DNA of 64,000 nt from Scyliorhinus canicula (GCF_902713615.1 NC_052149.1:125925256-125989255); one strand, 5' to 3'; counted from the stretch's first letter, positions 2,245-64,000 are shown. The notes: generated from the sequence alone by a model not told the origin. Program-made: numbers and translations.

Positions 2245-4980
2245 GTGAACCCTGGTTCGAATCCCATCACAGCAGATGGCCAAATTTGAATCCAATAAAA
2301 ATTGAATTCAATGTTTAATGATGACCCTGAAATGACTGTTGATTGTTGTAAAAGCCCATCTCGTTCACTAATGTCCTTTTGGGAAAGAAGTCTGCCGTCC
2401 TTACGTGGTCTGGCCTACATGTGATTCCAGGCTAACAACAATTTGGTTGACATCTGGGAAAACACTTCTGAAATGCAGCCACTTAGAGGGCAATTAGGGA
2501 TGGGCAATAACTGCTGGCCCAGAAAATGACACCCACACCAATGAATACATTTAAAAAACAATTCACCCAGCAACGTGGAAAATTGCCCAGGTTTGTCCTG
2601 CACACACCAAACAGGACAAATCCAACCCGGCCGATTACTGCTCCATCAGGCTACTCTCGATCATCAGTAAGGGATGATCAACATTGCTATCAAGTGTCGT
2701 TCAGTCTTGGGGTCACTCAGCTCCTGACCTCATTACAGCCTTGGTTCAAACATGGACAAAAGAGCTGAACTCCAGAGGTGAGGCCAGAGTAACTGCCCTT
2801 TGACATCGAGGCAGCATTTGACCAAGTTTGGCATCAAGGAGCCCGAGCAAAACTGGAGTCAATGGGAATCAGGGGGAAAACTCTCCGCTGGTTGGAGTCA
2901 TACCCAGCACAAAGGAAGATAACTGTGAATATTGGAGGTCAGTCATCTCTGTCCTCGGACATCCACACAATCCCTACAGTGCAGAAAGAGGCCATTTGAC
3001 CCTTTGAGTCGGCACCAGCCCTCCAAACAGTACCGCACCCAGGTCCACTCCCCCGGCCAATCCCCACAGACCAATCTAACCTTTGGATTCTAAGTCACAA
3101 TTTAACCTGGCTAATCCACTTAACCTGAATTTTCTTGGACTGTGGGAGGAAACCGGAGCACCCAAAGAAAACCCATGCAGACAGCGGGAGAACGTGCAAA
3201 ATCCATAAAGTCACCCAAGGTTGGAATCGAACCCATGTCTCCGGCGCTGTGAGGCAGAAGTGCCAACCACTCTGCCACCATGGACATTACTCACGGGTTC
3301 TTCAGGGGAGGCTCCGAGGCTCAACCAGCTTCAGCTGCTTCATGAATGACTTTCTTTCTGTCATGAGGTCAGACGTGGGGATGTTCATTCATGACTGCAC
3401 AATGTTCAGCACAATGTTCAGCACCATTCACAACTCCACAGACACTGAAGCAGACCTTGCCCTATTACAACAAGTCCTGGACAAAACCCCGGTTTGGGCT
3501 GGCAACTGGCAAGTAACATTTGTGCCAGACAATGACCATCTCCAACAAGAGAGAATCTAACCATTAACCCTTCACATTCAAAGGCAGTACCTTCACTAAG
3601 TTCCCGATTATCAGCATCCTGCGGGTTACAATTACCAGAAACTGAACTGGACTAACCATATAAATACTGTGACGACAGGAGCAGGTCAAAGATAAGGAAT
3701 CCTGTGGCAGGTAACTCACCTCCTGACTCCCTAAAGCTTATCCACCATTTACAAGGCACAAGCTGGGAGTGTGATGGAATACTCTCCACTTCCCTGGATG
3801 AGTGCAACTTCAAAAGCACTCAAAGAGCTCAACACCATCCAGGACAAAGAACCCCCACATGATTGGTACCCCACCCACAAACATTCTCTCCCTCCACCAC
3901 TGATGAACAGTGGCAGCCGTCTGTACCATCTACAAGATGCACTGCATGATCTCACCAAGGTTCCTTGGGCAGCAGCTTCCAAACCCACAACCACGACCAT
4001 CTAGAAGGACAAAGGCAGCAGATACATGGGTCGGGATTCTCCAGGAACGTGGCTAAGTGTTGACGCCGGCATAAACACCGGAGTGCTTCACGCCGGCATC
4101 AATGGGTGTCTTGGTCCAGCGATTCTGTATCCCACAGGGAGCCAGCACGGCACTGGACTACTCTGCACTGCTCCAGCTGCCGTACGCAGCTCTGCACTGC
4201 TGGCCGCGGGTCCCTACATACATGTGGCGGCCGCTTCCACGCCAGCACTGCACAACATGGCAGAGCAACACAGCAGACCGGCACGGAAGAAGGTAGGTCC
4301 CCACAAGGTAGGCCCGCCGATGGTGGTCCCCGATCACGGACCTGACCGTCGTGGAGGCCCGATCACGGACCTGGCCGTCGTGGAGGCCCGATCACGGACC
4401 TGGCCGTCGTGGAGGCCCGTCCAGACGACTGATTCCCCCCCGCCCTCCACCAGGACGGCCACTGCAGCCACGACGCCGAGCTCCCGCCGGTTGCAACCAT
4501 ATATGAACCACATCGGCGGGAACTCGGCTGGTCAACCGTGGAGAATCGCCGCGGGGGCCTCTTTCAAAGGTCCCTGACTGGTGTCGCATTGACCGCGCGC
4601 ATGTAACTGCCGCCGAATCTCCGGTCGCTGGAGAATCACGTCCCAGCGTCGGACCCAATCACGGGTCTGAGGCCCCATTCTGCGCCACCGCACCGAGCGC
4701 CATTTAGCCGCGGAGGCTCGGAGAATCCTGGTCTTGGGGCCAGCACTCCCTGGAACTTGGCCACCAAGTCACTAACCATCCTGACTTGGAAACATATTAC
4801 CATTCCTTCATTGTCACGGATTCGAAATCCTGGAACTCCCTTCCTAACAGCACTCTTGGTGTATCTATACCGCAAGGACACCAGCGGATTCAGAAGGCAG
4901 TTCACCACCACCTTCTGAAGGCTATGAAGGATGGGCAATAAACGCTGGTCCAACCAAAAACTCCCACATCACAGAAATAA
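2245..4980 (+). mobile_element. Decayed CR1/L2-clade LINE (with tRNA-SINE-like head) in cluster 1 J-C intron
   Basis: RT fragments (CFMNDFLSVMRSDVGMFIHDCTMF), 3' end with AATAAA near 4937; same family as 19029-22060 and 40535-43880. Interrupted by a V-SINE (~2960-3285) and a GC-rich MITE. Confidence 0.7.
4029..4733. mobile_element. GC-rich non-autonomous DNA transposon (Harbinger-like MITE)
   Basis: Imperfect TIRs GGTCGGGATTCTCC / GGAGAATCCTGGTC; similar to elements at 12477 and 36849. Confidence 0.6.
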
Positions 4981-5614
4981 ATTTCAAAATTGCAAAATGA
5001 ATTTGTGGTAGCAATTAAGAGAAGAAAAAGTTAACTTGTGTGTGGAGTTGGGAGACATGGAGATAGTTCTTAATGAATAATTGACATCAGTTTTCACAAA
5101 TGAGAGAGACAAAGCTGGCAATGGAAGAGTGATAATGTTGTACCGTTGTTTAAAAAGGGAGGAAGGGACAGACTGAGTCATTACTGACCAGTCAGTCTAA
5201 CCTCAGTGGTCGGGAAATTATTGGAAATAATTCTGAGAGAAATTAGAATCATCATTGAGAGAGACACAGTTCGATCAAGGACAGTCAACATGGATTTGTT
5301 TAGGGAAGGTCCTGTCTGACTAACTTGATTGACTTTTTTGAAGAGGGAACGAGGAGTGTTGATGAGGGGAGGGAGTTTGATGTTGACAACATGGGCTTTC
5401 CAAGAACTTTGACAGTTCTCCAACAACAGACGTGTCTGAAAATTAAAAGCTGATGGAATCAAAGGGAAAATTGAAAATTGGATTTCAAATTGGTTCAGTG
5501 TCAGGAGTTAAAGGTTTGCTGTTAAATTGGTTAAATCATTTTGGAATGTTATCTAAACATTTGTAAAGAAGGTTACTACAAATTCAGCACTGAAATGGTT
5601 TCTTTTAATTTCGA

Positions 5615-5822
5615 GTACCCAATTCATATTTTTCCCAATTAAGGGGCTATTTAGCGTGACCAATCCACCTATCCTACACGTCTTCGGGTTGTGGGGGTGA
5701 GACCCACGCAGACACGGAGAGAATGTGCAAACTCCACACGGACAGTGATCCGGGGCCGGGATTAAACCCGGGCACTCAGTGCCATAGGTAGTAGTGCTAA
5801 CCACTGCACCACCATGCCATCT
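5615..5822 (-). mobile_element. HE1-like V-SINE
   Basis: Reverse complement reads GGTGCAGTGGTTAGCACT...GGTTTAATCCCGGCCCCGGATCACTGTCCGTGTGGAGTTTGCACATTCTCTCCGTG (tRNA A/B boxes plus V-domain). Further copies near 2960-3285, 27500-27650, 28710-28880, 42100-42210, 48130-48330, 52590-52830, 54340-54670. Confidence 0.75.
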
Positions 5823-51186: not shown

Positions 51187-51515
51187 GCCGTGAGAATTCA
51201 CAACCCACACTGACCCTGCTGCCCCCCTCCCTGGAGGAGGTCAAGACCAAGAACACTGCCACCCTGGTGTGCCTTGCCAATCACTTCTATCCCGATGAGC
51301 TGGTGGTGGAGTGGAAGAAGGATGGTGCAGCCATTTCGGACGGGGTTCAGACCAGCAACTACCTGCGAGCTTCGGACAACACCTACAGCGTCAGCAGCCT
51401 GCTGACCCTCTCTGGCTCTGCCTGGGAGTCCAACGCCCGCTTCTCCTGTGCCCTCACCCACGTGAGCCTCTCCTCTGCCCTCAGCAAGAGCATCAGGAGA
51501 TCAGAATGTGTGTAG
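51187..51515 (+). CDS. IGKC: Ig kappa-type constant exon, cluster 2
   Basis: 329 nt after tttcAG; 6 nt differences from C1; ends RSECV*. Confidence 0.95.
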
Positions 51516-52473: not shown

Positions 52474-55400
52474 ATCTGGAATCTCTGAGTTTACAAGATT
52501 CAAATCAGAAAAGAGACTGAAAGTTGCTGGGATCAAATCATCACAATCACAATTCTCCAACCCATATTCCCCACCTCCCCCTTCTCCCATATTCTTCCTG
52601 TGTTTGTGTGGGTTTTCTTTGGGTGCTCCAGTTCCCCCACAGTCCAAAGATGTGCAGGTTAGGTGGATTGGCCATGCTAAATTGCCCTCAGTGTCCAAAA
52701 AGGTTAGGCGGGGTTACTGGGTTACGAAGATAGGGTAGAGGCATGGGCTTGGGTGGGGTGCTCTTTCCAAGGGCCAGTGCGGACTCGATGGGCTGAATGG
52801 CCTCCTTCTGCATTGTAAATTCTACGAATTCTATGAAGTTTATGAATTGTATATGACCTTACCACCTCACGTGGTCTCACTACTCCCAGTGTTTCAATCA
52901 CAGATAAGACCATCGCTGATCACTTCCTTATATCACTCCCCACCCACATACCCCTTCCACACCCCAACCCTACCCCCTTTCTGTATCCATCCCTGGAAAA
53001 ACCTATTCCCCAATTCACTTCCAACGACACTTTCAAAATCCCAACTATCTGTCTCTGGCCCTCCGATCACCACAACATTTCTGCAGAGACTGATTTACTC
53101 AGGGAGCAATGTAACTGGGAATGAACAGGCTCCTGTTTTGGGTGTGTTTAGTGGGGTGTTTCCCGGAGCCTGCAGTGCTGAAAATGATCCCGTTATTAAC
53201 CGGGATTCTGGGATATTTGGGCCTTGGTGAGGAAGGAGCCTCCGAGGCCGCACTGACATCCACTTCCTGCGAACTGAGCCCGTCAGTGCAGGGAGAGAAC
53301 AGGGGGTGATCTTTAAATGCTGCCCCCATCCCTCAACTCCCAACACGGCCTCCGGATTCCCCAAATTACCGATTAGGGGGTTCTCGACCCACCCCCATCC
53401 ACCCGGCAAAGGCAGGGAATGCTCGGGGCCTGATCCCAGGCTCGGACAGCCTGCTGCCCGGGCAGCATGGCAGTGCCAGCCTGACACCCTGGCAGTGCTC
53501 ATGCCATACTGGTCGTGACCCATGGACATCTTGACAGGGCCAGTGTGGCATTGCCAGGGTGACCAGATGGCATTGCCAGAGTCACCTGGTGGCACTGCCA
53601 GCATGCCAGGCTAGCACTGCTAAGCTGTCTCCAACACCCTCCACCATCCCAGAGATACTCACCTTGGCGGGGCACCTTAGTGAAGAAGCCCCTGGGACAC
53701 TTTCTGGTGCCACCACACACATGCTCCAGTACAGCAGGTGGAGGTAGGAACTCCCGAGGGAGCGGAGGGTCGGAGGCTGGGCCGGCCCCAGGGACTAGCT
53801 GCCATCCAGAAGGGTGTTGGGGTTCTGGAATGGACAGTCCCATCGATTGTGGTGATGCAGTCGCAGATTCAGCGACTACATGAGGGGTTGTTGGTGAGTA
53901 TCCAGCACCTGCAGGAGAAGGTGGAGGAATCCAACCGTGTGCAGGAGCAGGAGGTGGTGCTGCCATGGTGACACCCAGGTCCGCAGTGGAGGCCTTGGGG
54001 CGAGGGTTTCAGCCCTGGATCAGCATGTCCAAGGCTTGGGGCACACTCTGCGGCCGCTGGCCTAGGCCCAGTACAAGGCTGTCCCCTCACAGGCAGCAAT
54101 GTGCCAGACACTGCTGGACAGTGCAGTCACAGCGGGCAGAACAGGGCAGCACCACACTACCTGGGACAGTCGAACAGCAGCCGGGTCCATCCAGACCCAT
54201 TTGCCCCAGAAGATGGCCAGCAAAGGGGACCCAGGTCACAGAGTAGGAATCACAGCGGGCTGCCTCCACTCCTGATCCACCTGGAGGTAGCATTAGGACC
54301 TGTAAGGACAGAAAATTAGAAAGCAGTTTTCACAGAATCACAGTATTTACAGTGCAGAAGGCCATTCAGCCCACCGAGTCTGCACCGGCCCTTGGAAAGA
54401 TCACCCTACCTAAGCCCACACCTCCACCCTATCCCTGTAACCCCACTTGACCTTACCTGTTTTGGATACTAAGGGCAATTTAATAAATATCGCCAATTCA
54501 CCTACCCCTGCACATCTTTGAACTGTGGGAGGAAACCGGAGCACCCGGAGGAAACCCACACAGAAAAGCGGAGAATGTGCAGACTCCGCACAGACAGTGA
54601 CCCAGCCGGGAATCAAACGTGGGACCCTGGCGCTGTGAAGCCATTGTGCTAACCACTATGCTACCGTGTTCCCTTATGTTGGCATGGGTTCAGGGCACAG
54701 TTTAGTGATGGGGGCTAGGGCCCAATCTGTATATTTGTTGTCACATTAAACACCTGTTCACACTGTTACAACCTGCCTTGGTGCTCTGTCGGATGGGTGT
54801 GAGGGGTGGGCTGGTCTGGGCTGGCCAGATAGGGTGCGTGGGGCAGGGGAAATGGACGGTTGTTGGGGGTTGGCTTGGCTGAAAGGCCACAGTTCAGAAA
54901 GCGCTCACCGCTCCGGTGTCCCATTCCCCCGCCACCCACAACTACCACCGTCCCAACCTCCGCCACATCAATGATTTGATGGGACTGTGTGATGGATTGT
55001 CCAGCTCGCAGGCAGGGATCACCCAGGTGGAAAGTGCTATTGTGGCAGGAGTCAGACATTGTCAAACGATGCGGAGCACCAGAGCTCATTGCTGAGCGGG
55101 CTGTCATCATCCTCCGTCCCATTGACCAGACCCGCTGTTACTGCCAACCAGGGTCTGCATCCCGTAGTGTGGCAGGAATGTATCATAGAGGATGTTGTGG
55201 GCGGGCGAGTGGCCAGGAGGCGGGGCGGGGTGTGTGGGGGGCATTGTGGTGTCTGTGCCCTTGGTCAGACACCGTTAGTCGGTGAATCTGGAGGTGATCA
55301 GAGCGTCCCGTGTACATTGGCCCTTGTGCACACATTGTAGGGCCTCCAGTGCCTGCCCAGGCCCTATGCCCTGCCTGTCTCGCCCTCCCCTACATCCTCC

Positions 55401-55681
55401 TCATCAGAGGAGACCGGATGTTCATCCTCTTCTGCCAGCACATTGCCCCTCTGCTGCGTGATGTTGTGGAGGGTACAGCAGGCCACCATAATGCGGGCGA
55501 CCCTCTGGGGACCAAACTGAAGGGCCCCTCCGGAGTGGTCCAGGCACCTGAACCACATCTTCAGGAGGCCGAAGCACCGCTCGGTCACACTCCTGGTCGC
55601 TACATGGGCGTTGTTGTAGAGGGTCTCCACGTGATCAGCCACAGCCGCAGTAGATAACCCCTATCACCCAGAAGCAAACCC

Positions 55682-56103
55682 TGTCATAATATGCACCCAT
55701 GCATATCATGATGCAAAAGCAGGCAGTGACAGACACCAAGGTGAGCCAATCAACATACAGAACAAAACACAACCAATCACCAGACAGAACACCAGAGGGT
55801 GGCGTCCAACTATAAAACACACGAGGCATCAGCACTCTGCCTCTTTCCACTGGTGACAACTGTAGTGACAGTCAGGGTGTCCAAATCATTCAACACCTTC
55901 TACATGTGGATCAGAGGTAGCCTGGTCTATATAGTTAGTGTTAGTTTACTTCGAGTAGTAGAGAGTCAACCCACAGGCAGCTGTGCGCTTCGTTACTGAA
56001 GTTCAATAAATCTTATTGAACCAACAACTATGTTTGGTGTATGCTTTATCGTTTATCTGCATCATGTTGCAGTCTGTGTTATACCAGGGTGAATAACACA
56101 ACA
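55682..56103 (+). mobile_element. Solo LTR in the transposase
   Basis: TGT...ACA ends, 5-bp TSD AACCC, CCAAT/TATAAA/AATAAA inside. Confidence 0.85.
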
Positions 56104-56162
56104 AACCCCTCAGCTGGGGGGGGGCATCTTGAACATGTCAGGAATCATCGAGTGTGCCAGGA

Positions 56163-59100
56163 TGAAAGAGTTGTGCACACTGCCCGGGTATTGGGCACAG
56201 TTGTTTATGATTCAGGCTTTGTGCACACTGCCCGGGTATTGGGCACAGTTGTGTATGATGAAGACGTTGTGCACACTGCCCGGGCATTGGGCACAGTTGT
56301 TTATGATGAAGGTGTTGTGCACACTGCCCGGGTATTGGGCACAGTTGTTTATGATGAAGGAGTTGTGCACACTGCCCGGATATTGGGAACATTTGTGTAT
56401 GATGAAGGCGTTGTGCACACTGCCCGGGTATTGGGCACAGTTGTTTATGATGAAGACGTTGTGCACACTGCCCGGGTATTGGGCACAGTTGTGTATGATG
56501 AAGGAGCTGTGCACACTGCCCGTGTATTGGGCACAGTTGTGTATGATGAAGGTGTTGTGCACACTGCCCGGGTATTGGGCACAGTTGTTTATAGTGAAGG
56601 TATTGTGCACACTGCCCGGGTATTGGGCACAGATGGTTATGATGAAGACGTTGTGCACACTGCCCGGGTATTGGGCACAGTTGTTTATGATGAAGACATT
56701 GTGCACACTGCCCGGGTATTGGGCACAGTTGTGTATGATGAAGGAGCTGTGCACACTGCCCGTGTATTGGGCACAGTTGTGTATGATGAAGGTGTTGTGC
56801 ACACTGCCCGGGTATTGGGCACTGCTGTTTATGATGAAGACGTTGTGCACACTGCCCGGGTATTGGGCACAGTTGTTTATGATGAAGACGTTGTGCACAC
56901 TGCCAGGGTATTGGGCACAGTTGTGTATGATGAAGTCGTTGTGCACACTGCCCGGGTATTGGGCACAGTGGTGTATGATGAAGACGTTGTGCATACTGCC
57001 CGGGTATTGGGCACAGTTGTGTATGATGAAGACGTTGTGCACACTGCCCGGGTATTGGGCACAGTTGTGTATGATGAAGACATTGTGCACACTGCCCGGG
57101 TATTGGGCACAGTTGTGTATGATGAAGACATTGTGCACACTGCCCGGGTATTGGGCAAAGTTGTGTATGATGAAGGCTTTGTGCACACTGCCCGGGTATT
57201 AGGCACAGTTGTGTATGATGAAGGCGTTGTGCACACTGCCCGGGTATTGGGCACAGTTGTGTATGATGAAGACGTTGTGCACACTGACCGGGTATTGGGC
57301 ACAGTTGTGTATGATGAAGACGTGCACACTGCCCGGGTATTGGGCACAGTTGTGTTTGATGAAGACGTTGTGCACACTGCCCGGGTATTGGGCACAGTTG
57401 TGAATGATGAAGGCGTTCTGCACACAGCCCGGGTATTGGGCACAGTTGTGTGTGATGAAGACATTGTGCACACTGCCCGGGTATTGGGCACAGTTGTGTA
57501 TGATGAAGGAGTTGTGCACACTGTCCGGGTATTGGGCACAGTTGTTTATGATGAAGGCGTTGTGCACACTGCCCGGGTATTGGGCACAGTTGTGTCTGAT
57601 GAAGACGTTGTGCACACTGCCCGGGTATTGGGCACAGTTGTTTATGATGAAGACGTTGTGCACACTGCCCGGCTATTGGGCACAGTTGTGTATGATGAAG
57701 GTGTTGTGCACACTGCCCGGGTATTGGGCACAGTTGTGTATGATGAAGGCGTTGTGCACACTGCCCGGGTATTGGGCACAGTTGTTTATGATGAAGGCGT
57801 TGTGCACACTGCCCGGGTATTGGGCACAGTTGTTTATGATGAAGACGTTGTGCACACTGCCCGGGTATTGGGCACAGTTGTGTATGATGAAGGAGCTGTG
57901 GACACTGCCCGTGTATTGGGCACAGTTGTTTATGGTGAAGGTATTGTGCACACTGCCCGGGTATTGGGCACAGTTGTTTATGATGAAGACGTTGTGCACA
58001 CTGCCCGGGTATTGGGCACAGTTGTTTATGATGAAGACGTTGTGCACACTGCCCGGGTATTGGGCACAGTTGTGTATGATGAAGGGGTTGTGCACACTGC
58101 CCGGGTATTGGGCACAGTTGTGTATGATGAAGACGTTGTGCACACTGCCCGGGTATTGGGCACAGTTGTTTATGATGAAGGCTTTGTGCACACTGCCCGG
58201 GTATTGGGCACAGTTGTTTATGATTAAGGCTTTGTGCACTCTGCCCGGGTATTGGGCACAGTTGTGTATGATGAAGACGTTGTGCACACTTCCCGGGTAT
58301 TGGGAACAGTTGTGTATGATGAAGACGTTGTGCACACTGCCCGGGTATTGGGCACAGTTGTGTATGATGAACGAGTTGTGCACACTGCCCGGGTATTGGG
58401 AACAGTTGTGTATGATGAAGGCGTTGTGCACACTGCCCGGGTATTGGGCACAGTTGTGTATGATGAAGGAGCTGTGCACACTGCCCGTGTATTGGGCACA
58501 GTTGTGTCTGCTGAAGGTATTGTGCACACTGCCCGGGTATTGGGCACAGTTGTTTATGGTGAAGGTATTGTGCACACTGCCCGGGTATTGGGCACAGTTG
58601 TTTATGATGAAGACGTTGTGCACACTGCCCGGGTATTGGGCACAGTTGTTTATGGTGAAGGTATTGTGCACACTGCCCGGGTATTGGGCACAGTTGTTTA
58701 TGATGAAGACGTTGTGCACACTGCCCGGGTATTGGGCACAGTTGTGTATGGGGAAGGCTTTGTGCACACTGCCCGGGTATTGGGCACAGTTGTTTATGAT
58801 GAAGACGTTGGGCACACTGCCCGGGTATTGGGCACAGTTGTTTATGATGAAGACGTTGTGCACACTGCCCGGGTATTGGGCACAGTTGTGTATGATGAAG
58901 ACATTGTGCACAATGCCCGGGTATTGGGCACAGTTGTGTATGATGAAGGCATTGTGCACACTGCCCGGGTATTGGGCACAGTTGTTTATGATGAAGACGT
59001 TGGGCACACTGCCCGGGTATTGGGCACAGTTGTTTATGATGAAGATGTTGTGCACACTGCCCGGGTATTGGGCACAGTTGTGTATGATGAAGACGTTGTG

Positions 59101-61296
59101 CACACTGCCCGGGTATTGGGCACAGTTGTGTATGATGAAGACGTTGTGCACACTGCCCGGGTATTGGGCACAGTTGTTTATGATGAAGACGTTGTGCACA
59201 CTGCCCGGGTATTGGGCACAGTTGTGTATGATGAAGACGTTGTGCACACTGCCCGGGTATTGGGCACAGTTGTGTATGATGAAGACGTTGTGCACACTGC
59301 CAGGGTATTGGGCACAGTTGTGTATGATGAAGACGTTGTGCACACTGCCCGGGTATTGGGAACAGTTGTGTATGATGAAGACGTTGTGCACACTGCCCGG
59401 GTATTGGGCACAGTTGTTTATGATGAAGGCTTTGTGCACACTGCCCGGGTATTGGGCACAGTTGTTTATGATGAAGGCGTTGTGCACACTGCCCGGGTAT
59501 TGGGCACAGTTGTGTATGATTAAGGCTTTGTGCACACTGCCCGGGTATTGGGCACAGTTGTTTATGATGTAGGTGTTGTGCACACTGCCCGGGTATTGGG
59601 CACAGTTGTGTATGATGAAGGTGTTGTGCACACTGCCCGGGTATTGGGCACAGTTGTTTATGATGAAGGTGTTGTGCACACTGCCCGGGTATTGGGCACA
59701 GTTGTGTATGATGAAGACGTTGTGCACACTGCCCGGGTATTGGGCACAGTTGTGTATGATGAAGGTGTTGTGCACACTGCCCGGGTATTGGGCACAGTTG
59801 TGTATGATGAAGACGTTGTGCACACTGCCCGGGTATTGGGCACAGTTGTTTATGATGAAGGAGTTGTGCACACTGCCCGGGTATTGGGCACAGTTGTTTA
59901 TGATGAAGACGTTGTGCACACTGCCCGGGTATTGGGCACAGTTGTGTATGATGAAGGCGTTGTGCACACTGCCCGGGTATTGGGCACAGTTGTGTATGAT
60001 GAAGACGTCGTGCACACTGCCCGTTTATTGGGCACAGTTGTCTATGATGAAGACGTTGTGCACACTGCCCGGGTATTGGGCACAGTTGTGTATGATGAAG
60101 ACGTTGTGCACACTTCCCGGGTATTGGGCACAGTTGTGTATGATGAAGACGTTGTGCACACTGCCCGGGTATTGGGAACAGTTGTGTATGATGAAGACGT
60201 TGTGCACACTGCCCGGGTATTGGGCACAGTTGTTTATGATGAAGGCTTTGTGCACACTGCCCGGGTATTGGGCACAGTTGTTTATGATGAAGGCGTTGTG
60301 CACACTGCCCGGGTATTGGGCACAGTTGTGTATGATTAAGGCTTTGTGCACACTGCCCGGGTATTGGGCACAGTTGTTTATGATGTAGGTGTTGTGCACA
60401 CTGCCCGGGTATTGGGCACAGTTGTGTATGATGAAGGTGTTGTGCACACTGCCCGGGTATTGGGCACAGTTGTTTATGATGAAGGTGTTGTGCACACTGC
60501 CCGGGTATTGGGCACAGTTGTGTATGATGACGACGTTGTGCACACTGCCCGGGTTTTGGGCACAGTTGTGTATGATGAAGGTGTTGTGCACACTGCCCGG
60601 GTATTGGGCACAGTTGTGTATGATGAAGACGTTGTGCACACTGCCCGGGTATTGGGCACAGTTGTTTATGATGAAGGAGTTGTGCACACTGCCCGGGTAT
60701 TGGGCACAGTTGTTTATGATGAAGACGTTGTGCACACTGCCCGGGTATTGGGCACAGTTGTGTATGATGAAGGCGTTGTGCACACTGCCCGGGTATTGGG
60801 CACAGTTGTGTATGATGAAGACGTCGTGCACACTGCCCGTTTATTGGGCACAGTTGTCTATGATGAAGACGTTGTGCACACTGCCCGGGTATTGGGCACA
60901 GTTGTGTATGATGAAGACGTTGTGCACACTTCCCGGGTATTGGGCACAGTTGTGTATGATGAAGACGTTGTGCACACTGCCCGGGTATTGGGCACAGTTG
61001 TGTATGATGAAGGCGTTGTGCACACTGCCTGTGTTTTGGGCCCAGTTGTGTATGATGAAGGCTTTGTGCACACTGCCCGGGTATTGGGCACAGTTGTGTA
61101 TGATGAAGGCGTTGTGCACACTGCCCGGGTATTGGGCACAGTTGTTTATGATGAAGGCTTTGTGCACACTGCCCGGGATTGGGCACAGTTGTGTCTGATG
61201 AAGGCGTTGTGCACACTGCCCGGGTATTGGGCACCGTTGTGTATGATGAAGGCTTTGTGCACACTGCCCGGGTATTGGGCACAGTTGTGTGTGATG
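56163..61296. repeat. 48-bp minisatellite/satellite, ~107 copies
   Basis: Unit GATGAAGACGTTGTGCACACTGCCCGGGTATTGGGCACAGTTGTGTAT; gives 16-aa periodic ORFs. Confidence 0.97.
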
Positions 61297-62111
61297 CTCA
61301 GCTGATGGTTACACGCCAGCTGCATGGTCATCGAGTGGAACCCCTTACGATTTGTGTAGAGCGGCCTGTCATCTGCAAATGTTCGCAGGAGGACATGCAC
61401 CCCGTTGATCTCTCCTTGACCCGGGGTATCCCGGCGATGTATCGTGGTGGGCACGGGCCACATTGAAATGGATATATTGTGGCTTCTGGGAAGATAGGGC
61501 CTCCGTGACAACGCGGATGTACCTTTGCACCGAGCTCTGTGAGATCCCAGACTGGATCCCACTCATCGCCTGGAAGGACCCCATGGCGTAAAGGTTCAGG
61601 GCGACCGTCACGTTGACGACCACTGGGAGCGGGTGTCCTCTCCTATTGATGGTGCCGGGAGCATCATGATCTGGCAGATATTCCGCACTGTCCCCTGATC
61701 AGTCGGAGACTTCGACAGCATACCCGGTCCGGCATGTCCTCGAATGTCAGGCGCTGCCGGTACACATGAGGCCTCATGTGGCACCTCCTTTGCACCTCCT
61801 CCTCTTCCTCCTCCTCGGCCTGTTGTGTGGCCAGCACTCCATCCTTGGGTTTGGATTTGTTTTATTGTCACGTGTACCGAGGTACAGTGAAACGTATTGT
61901 TCTGCGCACAGTCCAGACAGATCATTCCATACATGAAAAATAACATAGGCCATACATAAATACACAATGTAAATACATAGCCACAAGCATCGAGTGAAGC
62001 ATACAGGAGTGTAGTACTACTCAGTCGAGAAGATGTGTGATGAGATCAGATCAGTCCATAAGAGGGTCATTCAGGAGTCGGGTAACAGCGGGGAAGAAGC
62101 TGTTTTTGAAC

Positions 62112-62328
62112 CCAGTAAGAAGTCTTACAACACCAGGTTAAAGTCCAACAGGTTTGTTTCAAATCACTAGCTTTCGGAGCACTGCTCCTTCATCAGGTGA
62201 TTCACTTGAGGAAGGAGCAGTGCTCAGAAAGCTAGTGATTCAAAACAAACCTGTTGGACTTTAACCTGGTGTTGTAAGACTTCTTACTGTGCTCACCCCA
62301 GTCCAACGCCGGCATTTCCACATCATGG
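62112..62328. mobile_element. Penelope-like palindromic insertion
   Basis: Near-perfect inverted repeat 62113-62289; flanked by an 11-bp duplication GTTTTTGAACC. Confidence 0.7.
62164..62200 (-). ncRNA. Minimal type I hammerhead ribozyme motif
   Basis: Minus strand TCAC-CTGATGA-A-GGAGC.AGT.GCTCC-GAA-AGCT-A-GTGA: stem I TCAC/GTGA, core CUGAUGA and GAAA, stem II, palindromic AGCT stem III. Confidence 0.75.
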
Positions 62329-62840
62329 TTTTTGAACCTGTTAGTGCGTGTTCTCAGACTTTTGTATCTCCTGGTCGATGGAAGAAGTGGGAAGAGTGAG
62401 TAAGCTGGGTGGGAGGGGTCTTTGATTATGCTGCCCGCTTTCCCAATGCAGTGGGAGGCGTAGACAGAGTCAGTGGATGGGAGGTGGGTTTGTGTAATGG
62501 ACTGGGCTGTGTTCACGACTCTGTAGATTCTTACGGTGTTGGGCCGAGCAGTTGCCACACCAGGCTGTGATGCTGCCAGATAGGATGCTTACTATGGTGC
62601 CTCTGTAAAAATTGGGAAGAGTTAATGTGGATATGCCAAATTTCCTTTGTTTCCTGAGAACGTATAGGCACTGTTGTGCTTTCTTGGTCACAGCCTCGAC
62701 ATTGGTGGACAAGGACAGCTTATTGGTGATGTGCACACCTAGGAATTTGAAACTGTTAACCATCTCGGCACCATCTCCACCTCTACACCATTGATGCAGA
62801 CAGGGGTGTGTATGATACTGCACTTCCTGAAGTCAATGAC

Positions 62841-63140
62841 TGATGGAACCATCAATTCACCAGACACGTGTTTCCGATATGAATCTAGGCTTTAATCAAC
62901 TTACTTCAGAGCCAGCCTGTTACCCGTTGATGAACTCTTAGTGAACCCAGGCTGACTCTGGACAAGGGTATTTATACAGCTGCACTAGGAGGAGGAGTCA
63001 TGGGCGGAGCCAAGGGTTGAGCCCAGTACAAGTTCCTGAGTACTCCCAGCGCTACTCCTCCTAGTGGTAGGATAGCGCTACTGCGCTTACAAAGACAGTG
63101 TGAATTAACATATATACATCTATATATTACATTCACCACA
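62841..63140 (-). mobile_element. Solo LTR (Gypsy-type)
   Basis: TGATG...CACCACA, 5-bp TSD ATGAC; related to 10057-10360. Confidence 0.85.
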
Positions 63141-64000
63141 ATGACCAACTCTTCAGTTTCGCTGACATTGAGGGAGAGATTGTTGTCATTGCACCAGTCC
63201 ACGAGGTTCTCTATCTCCCTCCTGTACTCTGACTCATCACTGTTCAAGATCCGACCCACTATGGTTGTGTCATCAGCAAACCTGGACATGGAGTTGGAGC
63301 CAAACTTTGCCACGCAGTCGTGTGTGTATAGGAAATATAGTAGGGGGCTAGGTACGCAGCTTTAGAGGGCCCAGGTATTGAGGACAATCGTGCAGCCCCC
63401 CCAACCCCCACCAGCAGTAGAACCGGCATCGAAGAGGTGGCGCCTCTCCGGGTCCGAACCCCTCTCTCTCCCTCATCGGCCACGATGCCTGTTTCACGAT
63501 TGTTAAAAGCACAAGTGAACCTCGCAGTCGGGAACTCCCCCCGATGGAGGCGGAGAATCGCGGAGTCCTGGAGAATACCGGGTCAGGCACGCTGATATGC
63601 CAATGCCATTTTCTCTAAGTGAGGAATGGAACACAATGACGCTGCTGTCGAGGCCCTGGAGAATTGCCATTTTGTGTGAAACCGGCGCGCGCCATGATTT
63701 CAGAGTCAAAACAGATTCCCCACCGAATTGCATTTTGCGATTTTGGTGTTGGCCGACAGAGAAACCCGCCCAACATCTGTCCTTCCTGCAGTAACTGACT
63801 GCTTAACTAATAATGCAATGCCTCCTCCTCATTTACCCCCGCCCCTGTCTCGCCTGAAGATTTTATATCAGCTGCCAATCCTGCCCCTCCCTCAACCACA
63901 TCTCCGTGATGGCAACTATATCACAATTCCACTGGCTGGATTCTCCGCCGGCGGATGCTTCATTTTGCCGGCAGCCCGGAGGTTTCCCAACGGTGTGGGG

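Follow-up and report, generated by a model that had tools for sequence, protein, structure and literature searches.

The stretch of DNA considered here, 64,000 nucleotides from the catshark Scyliorhinus canicula (GCF_902713615.1 NC_052149.1:125925256-125989255; this whole stretch is referred to below as the window), carries on its minus strand a tandem array of 48-bp units, which is embedded in the remains of a transposase gene of the PIF/Harbinger family. The array is most probably a non-functional minisatellite, which grew as a 48-bp coding segment was amplified in tandem within a transposase that had already been inactivated. The origin of most tandem repeats is unreadable, as both the founder and its flanks have decayed; at this locus the founder (16 codons), both of its native flanks, the probable microhomology of the first duplication and a later growth step of 17 units are all legible. 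The case is very legible and at the same time conceptually ordinary, its mechanism being already known.

The array and its host transposase

Tandem Repeats Finder detects a single array at 56161-61296, with a period of 48, 107.1 copies, 93% matches, no indels and a score of 8690, and tiling of the minus strand from 61289 down to 56158 yields 107 units, in agreement with the roughly 107 units that the original prediction, made from the sequence alone, had placed in a Harbinger transposase. A length of 48 bp is shared by 105 of these units, the odd ones being unit 3, with 47 bp (a 1-bp deletion), and unit 83, with 45 bp (one codon lost). The consensus unit is CACAACTGTGCCCAATACCCGGGCAGTGTGCACAACG[C/T]CTTCATCATA, which translates as HNCAQYPGSVHN[A/V]FII; in the phase in which it originated the unit encodes [T/I]HNCAQYPGSVHNxFI and has CATC at both of its ends, and the junction between two consecutive units reads ...TTCATCATACACAACTG.... 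A 30-nt core of the unit finds 105 matches at no more than 3 mismatches, all of which lie within the array, vs 0 expected in shuffles, and no further copy of the 48-bp unit or of the flanking transposase pieces occurs in the 64-kb window. A minisatellite consists of units of 10-100 bp, set head to tail over 0.5-30 kb at a defined locus, and 107 copies of a 48-bp unit over 5.13 kb qualify as one. A satellite in the classical sense is highly abundant in its genome, its long arrays usually being heterochromatic or spread over several loci; the present array, about 5 kb long and verified at one locus, is of minisatellite scale and not yet what it had first been described as, a satellite.

The array keeps the register of the native gene at both of its ends, and no foreign sequence is found at either junction. 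The flanking peptides, which are those quoted in the prediction, are ...NRKGFHSMTMQLACNHQLSIT on one side and PGSVHNSFILAHSMIPDMF followed by LLGDRGY on the other, and the native reading across the founding segment is ...QLSI-[T HNCAQYPGSVHN S FI]-LAHSMIPDMF. The 16 codons in which the PGSVH(D) motif is contained make up the whole array, with both native flanks intact, just as had been proposed.

The sequences that flank the array on the minus strand are pieces of a decayed PIF/Harbinger transposase (Pfam DDE_Tnp_4, for which the gathering score cut-off is 24.8 bits). The piece at 61242-61562, which lies upstream of the array and runs into it, scores 27.0 bits at profile positions 10-58, and the C-terminal piece at 55367-55660 scores 41.5 bits at profile positions 103-158; a 33-residue piece that follows the array (56113-56211) corresponds to profile positions 45-69 and is, alone, below the threshold. 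When the 65 residues that end in the first unit were compared with 1.84 billion representative proteins, 346 matches were obtained at E <= 0.001, and the three best full-size ones among them (P0002, P0003 and P0004) are annotated as “putative nuclease HARBI1” of Scyliorhinus torazame. The nearest named relatives are HARBI1-like proteins of Scyliorhinus torazame, namely XP_072327009.1, XP_072351254.1 and XP_072369032.1.

The original prediction came with a preset test, according to which the sequence, once freed of the array and of an inserted long terminal repeat (LTR), should be continuous with Harbinger transposases. The colinearity was assessed by tblastn of P0003 (a HARBI1-like protein of 420 aa) against the window (Table 1). 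With the array and the LTR set aside, residues 74-376 of P0003 are covered strictly in order, with an identity of 53-67% across the aligned pieces, and this colinearity, together with the pieces that exceed the DDE_Tnp_4 threshold, answers the test in favor of continuity. The array unit itself corresponds to residues 251-266 of P0003. The LTR, which is a solo LTR, is bordered by a 5-bp target-site duplication, GGGTT, at 56104-56108 and 55677-55681, and has no second copy in the 64-kb window; residues 285 and 284 of P0003 abut across it, and no coding sequence was therefore lost upon its insertion.

The remnant follows the HARBI1-like proteins in the order of its motifs, i.e. (D/N)G.H, NRKG.HS, YPGSVH(D/N), LLGDRGY and YN..H..TR..E..FG.LK..FRCL, and departs from them in having Asn at both Asp positions and in its frameshifts, stops, deletion, solo LTR, 5′ truncation and 5.1-kb array. 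The residues of the catalytic Asp-Asp-Glu (DDE) triad, which from knowledge of the family we take to be the D in DG.H (D1), the D in PGS.HD (D2) and the E in E..FG.LK, are no longer all in place: D1 is N, in EINGVHV, and D2 is N at the edge of the array and in nearly all of its inner units, while the Glu is kept, in the VTERCFG of the C-terminal part. The reading frame shifts near 61434 and there are several stops in the transposase; another frameshift falls where nine C follow one another past DMFKM, in the 56109-56157 piece, and a short deletion with a frameshift follows WLIT in the C-terminal part. On its 5′ side the transposase is truncated at ~61861 by the tail of a long interspersed nuclear element (LINE). 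Judged from its sequence, the host gene is a dead member of the PIF/Harbinger family and a pseudogene.

Table 1. Positions in the window of the array, of the transposase pieces and of neighboring features (aa, residues of P0003)
Feature	Position	Strand	Basis
Array of 107 x 48-bp units, encoding HNCAQYPGSVHN(A/V)FII	56158..61289	-	Tandem Repeats Finder and tiling
Units 8-24, first copy of 17-unit (816-bp) duplication	60139..60954	-	unit-type strings
Units 25-41, second copy of 17-unit (816-bp) duplication	59323..60138	-	unit-type strings
Unit 10, DNCAQ*TGSVHDVFII, GAC at D2	60811..60858	-	tiling
Unit 27, duplicate of unit 10	59995-60042	-	tiling
N-terminal transposase part up to ...CNHQLSI(T), with frameshifts and stops	61297..61860	-	tblastn of P0003, DDE_Tnp_4
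Native transposase continuation past the last unit, AHSMIPDMFKMPPP...	56109..56157	-	alignment of P0003 aa 249-285
C-terminal transposase part, LLLGDRGY... then YNNAHVATRSVTERCFGLLKMWFRCL...LHNI	55367..55681	-	DDE_Tnp_4, P0003 aa 284-307 and 308-376
P0003 aa 74-110	61792-61682	-	tblastn
P0003 aa 130 onward	from 61629	-	tblastn
P0003 aa 208-266	61418-61242	-	tblastn
P0003 aa 249-266, each unit a separate match (52 high-scoring segment pairs, nearly all of these residues)	array units	-	tblastn
P0003 aa 249-285	56211-56101	-	tblastn
P0003 aa 284-307	55680-55615	-	tblastn
P0003 aa 308-376, 67% identity	55633-55427	-	tblastn
Solo LTR within the transposase, 422 bp, TG...CA ends	55682..56103	-	sequence; target-site duplication GGGTT
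Immunoglobulin C1-set exon (light-chain constant), ends ...SIRRSECV	51267-51515	+	Pfam C1-set, E = 1e-16
3′ part of LINE, tail abutting the truncated Harbinger 5′ side	61861..64000	-	RVT_1 and ALKBH8_N matches

Founding segment, growth and sequence evolution of the array

The founding segment, ACA CAC AAC ... TTC ATC, follows upon AG-CATC and has TT-CATC as its own end, which provides a 4-nt microhomology, CATC, at its two boundaries. In the phase of origin the first codon is ATA in 102 of the 107 units, and ACA is kept in one. The first duplication may have come about through replication slippage, or through microhomology-mediated misalignment, between the CATC sites 48 bp apart, and the growth to about 107 copies would then have proceeded by unequal sister-chromatid exchange or by slippage between copies. 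The near-perfect 816-bp duplication described below, together with smaller local repeats of unit types, is a visible trace of this growth step. The amplification may have taken place at the present locus or, alternatively, in an ancestral copy that was later duplicated along with its flanks. Tandem duplication inside the transposase domain is not confined to the catshark locus, as P0001, the top match by E-value, and P0007, both of them predicted Harbinger-type transposases of other genomes, carry two-copy tandem duplications that span the core from DG.H to (P)G..HD, with a length of ~65 aa in P0007 and of well >100 aa in P0001.

The unit does contain the short palindromes GTGCAC and CCCGGG to which the prediction had drawn attention, but these do not confer an unusual single-strand fold: three units taken as single-stranded DNA fold at -20 kcal/mol (z = -1.34), with 19 of 200 shuffles equal to them, and slippage driven by hairpins was accordingly rejected as a mechanism.

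The state of the catalytic Asp codons helps to order these events. The D1 codon in EINGVHV (GAG ATC AAC GGG...) is AAC, at 61404-61406, and at both catalytic sites the AAC is preceded by a C (ATC|AAC and CAC|AAC), so that a change from GAC to AAC amounts to a CpG transition. This decay, which had been part of the original prediction, is supported by Logan contigs of the public runs X1, X4 (an independent sample of the source species), X10 (organism B) and X13 (organism C, carrying another species label), which were aligned on a stretch made up of the left junction and three units. For the first D2 base (61208, with the contigs aligned on unit 2) the coding-strand G makes up 661/3188 of the depth in X1, 1112/3044 in X4, 9469/15539 in X10 and 34.6/91.4 in X13; the D2 codon is thus GAC in 21-61% of contig depth, and in the majority in one related species. 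The D1 codon (61406) is GAC in one contig of X10. The contigs point to GAC (Asp) as the ancestral D2 codon of the family.

Two units of the array also have GAC at this position, as had been noted. These units, 10 and 27, are identical, with four other changes including a stop, and are spaced by exactly 816 bp, from which it follows that they represent a single variant that was copied by the 17-unit duplication and not two ancestral survivors. Since both edge units and nearly all of the inner ones are without GAC, the founder was most likely AAC already, i.e. the Asp codon had probably turned into Asn (CAC|GAC -> CAC|AAC) by the time the amplification began.

A total of 51 distinct unit types can be told apart in the array, with the variants that units share grouped in local blocks. 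The largest visible rearrangement is formed by units 8-24 and 25-41, whose 816-bp copies differ by 2 nt (99.75% identity), both differences being located between unit 16 and unit 33; this block is one recent 17-unit duplication and has the signature expected from unequal exchange. A regular higher-order repeat was considered and rejected, as, aside from the 17-unit duplication, there is no lag at which the unit-to-unit distance is lowered. On average the units diverge from the consensus by 4.4% when all sites are counted and by 1.7% without four hypervariable sites, which are unit positions 1 and 36-38, with positions 36-37 being a CpG. With these four sites excluded, the units at the array edges carry 1.1-1.3 changes each vs 0.2-0.5 in the centre. 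The CpG of CCCGGG is retained in 104/107 units and that at positions 36-37 is heavily mutated.

The variation bears no mark of coding constraint. There are 18, 19 and 19 distinct variant alleles at codon positions 1, 2 and 3, and five units (10, 27, 76, 86 and 106) contain stops in the native frame, which the loss of 1 bp in unit 3 disrupts almost immediately; the even spread over codon positions, the five stop-bearing units and the deletion together indicate that the array evolves as non-coding DNA, and its being “in frame” results from 48 being 16 x 3. The array was also considered as a CpG-island-like tract, and this was rejected, its CpG observed/expected ratio of 0.54 being within the range of the window (0.27-0.75).

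Further observations concern the spectrum of changes and a shifted reading frame. Counted as distinct alleles, the array variants comprise 17 transitions vs 39 transversions, and the variants present in more than one unit comprise 5 vs 11; many of them are C>A and G>T, and such an excess of transversions is atypical of vertebrate germline mutation. After the deletion in unit 3, the shifted frame with the unit phase QLCPIPGQCAQRLHHT contains 0 stops across 1710 array codons. This stop-free frame is compatible with chance (rough P about 0.14), and gene predictors could call it a protein. A stretch of 19 stop-free units (304 aa), searched against 5.8 billion protein clusters, gave 3541 word-sharing candidates, none of which reached E <= 0.001.

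Weighing the origin of the array against its alternatives

A few points weigh against local amplification from the transposase as set out above. Taken alone, a microhomology of 4 nt is weak evidence. Both the array length and the 816-bp duplication depend on the assembly alone, and short contigs can neither span nor count a 48-bp repeat. It also has to be noted that at 61298, at the edge of the array, the T of the window (plus strand) appears in no contig of the four runs, all of which have G or A, and the locus's own left junction is therefore without independent confirmation; the T is a private variant, or else a base error. Some of these points would also suit an array that is largely an artefact of assembly, in which a short real tandem repeat was inflated or misarranged, and the lack of read support for the array length, the duplication of an 816-bp block at 99.75% identity and the excess of transversions (17 transitions vs 39 transversions) can all be counted in its favor. 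Such an artefact is nevertheless quite improbable, given that 51 unit types exist with their variants arranged in local blocks, that the main unit variants recur in the contigs of the independent sample X4, and that unit junctions are bridged by contigs of two runs: records 1 and 2 of X1 lie inside the array and cross unit boundaries, and record 17 of X13 (78 nt, 61207-61284, 3 mismatches) spans the boundary of unit 1 and unit 2 by at least 35 nt in both directions. Assemblers, moreover, tend to collapse arrays of this kind and not to expand them.

The contigs also bear on whether the array was born where it now lies. The Harbinger family is, by contig depth, high-copy in organisms A, B and C, and a native paralog with a single unit is seen in X4 as a loose end before 61247, which in coding sense reads GCCTGGCACACTCGGTGATTCCTGGCATGT, i.e. 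the continuation ...LAHSVIPGM directly after one unit. If the array had originated elsewhere, be it within a different Harbinger copy or within an ancestral chromosome segment, and had reached its present position by segmental duplication or by mobilization in trans, the unit would be expected to form a small dispersed family. The bridging contig of X13, with its different species label, and the small shares that array words have in organisms B, C and D are consistent with a dispersed unit, and the location of the window in an immunoglobulin light-chain locus, shown by the C1-set exon, fits arrival by duplication, as the light-chain loci of sharks consist of duplicated clusters. The depth of the unit in the X1 contigs (about 1650-2900, vs about 2650-5700 for the adjacent transposase bins, a rough measure) is however not above that of its neighbors, which implies an abundance not much greater than that of the family as a whole and makes a major satellite improbable. 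The shares of 0.28-0.38 that array words have in the runs of organism A are no proof of a tandem arrangement, as one native unit could by itself account for up to 18/48 of the word positions. An origin elsewhere is on this evidence unlikely, although it has more in its favor than an artefact of assembly. A function for the array, be it as a repeat protein or, 4.6 kb downstream of the light-chain constant exon, in a regulatory or structural role, is the least probable of the alternatives and hardly to be expected. It could draw upon the shifted frame that stays open across 1710 codons, the CpG of CCCGGG kept in 104/107 units and the proximity of the C-kappa-like exon; yet the native frame is interrupted, in unit 3 by the deletion and in five units by stops, the variants have no codon-position bias, chance allows for the open shifted frame (about 0.14), no repeat-bearing protein was found among the 5.8 billion clusters, and the CpG observed/expected ratio of 0.54 falls within the range of the other stretches of the window that are rich in transposable elements (TEs).

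Known counterparts and surroundings of the array

The closest known counterpart of a minisatellite founded on transposase codons is the CficCl-61-40 satellite of Chenopodium, the start monomer of which is a ~40-bp piece of the tnp2 transposase domain carried by Jozin, a CACTA-like element (Belyayev et al. 2020, PMC7320549). The two have in common that a 40-48 bp fragment of a DNA-transposon transposase served as the start monomer and that the array adjoins the parental transposase; as in a repeat seeded in the manner of Jozin, the catshark unit shows homology to a fragment of transposase coding sequence, directly at which the array begins. They differ in that CficCl-61-40 occurs in plants, derives from the CACTA superfamily, and is the most abundant satellite family of its genome, with many loci, whereas the catshark array is found in a shark, derives from PIF/Harbinger, and is present at one verified 5-kb locus, where both halves of the gene are in register with it. 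With this precedent for TE coding DNA as a satellite seed (PMC7320549), the present case is less notable than it had originally been held to be.

Tandem repeats derived from TEs are in general well documented (PMC9659126, PMC6947457), and their accepted growth mechanism is unequal exchange or slippage. According to review, most cases stem from non-coding or already repetitive parts of the elements, such as terminal inverted repeats, LTRs and untranslated regions (UTRs), and those derived from open reading frames (ORFs) are listed as well; the latter include PROsat and Pvc20, derived from LINE ORF2, and arrays derived from gag (reviews PMC9659126, PMC6947457), and other TE-derived examples are the 3′UTR repeats of Ogre (PMC7004042) and Tetris (PMC4079207). 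The catshark array resembles these repeats in that an internal segment of a TE was amplified in tandem and may serve as a satellite seed. The word “Harbinger” is absent from the text of one of the reviews (PMC9659126), and a literature search found no paper on Harbinger-derived arrays, nor on such arrays in sharks.

The locus leaves the accepted view unchanged, in which TE fragments, transposase coding ones included, seed minisatellites and satellites. Its use is that of a textbook-style example and of a variable number tandem repeat marker beside a shark immunoglobulin light-chain gene. Greater interest would arise only if a genome-wide survey showed Harbinger coding DNA to seed arrays repeatedly in sharks. 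That the coding sequence of catshark Harbinger transposases is a recurrent seed of tandem arrays can be advanced only tentatively and is more doubtful than probable; were it true, with the PGSVH(D) unit amplified independently in several copies or carried by array-bearing elements, it would constitute a live animal counterpart of the Jozin case of Chenopodium and would indicate a motif-specific or lineage-specific propensity to slippage.

As to the surroundings, the array is located about 4.6 kb downstream of the immunoglobulin light-chain constant exon listed in Table 1. A whole PIF/Harbinger transposon would have terminal inverted repeats, a TWA target duplication of 3 bp and, besides the transposase, a gene of Myb/SANT type. 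Downstream of the transposase, none of five ORFs (53.7-55.3 kb), considered as candidates for a Myb/SANT partner gene, has a Pfam match, and a tRNA-derived insertion resembling a short interspersed nuclear element (GGTAGCATAGTGGTTAGCACAATGGCTTCACAGCGCCAGGGTCCC...) lies on the minus strand at ~54330-54680. On the other side, the tail of the LINE has a very high contig depth, with tail-type loose ends at 61851-61861. Two insertions interrupt this element on the minus strand. One of them, at ~62870-63135, has TG...CA ends and a direct repeat, GTCAT, and splits the reverse transcriptase ORF between ...ETEELVI and DFRKCS; it looks like a second solo LTR and has no sequence relationship to that of the Harbinger transposase. 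The other, at ~62112-62327 in the LINE tail, contains a nearly perfect palindrome, the arms of which are ~80 nt long (AGTAAGAAGTCTTACAACACCAGGTTAAAGTCCAACAGG... and its complement), has a repeated GGTTCAAAAAC on its flanks, and may be a foldback element or a MITE-like one. A short repeat of a 22-bp unit in 2.5 copies is also present in the window, at 53546-53601.

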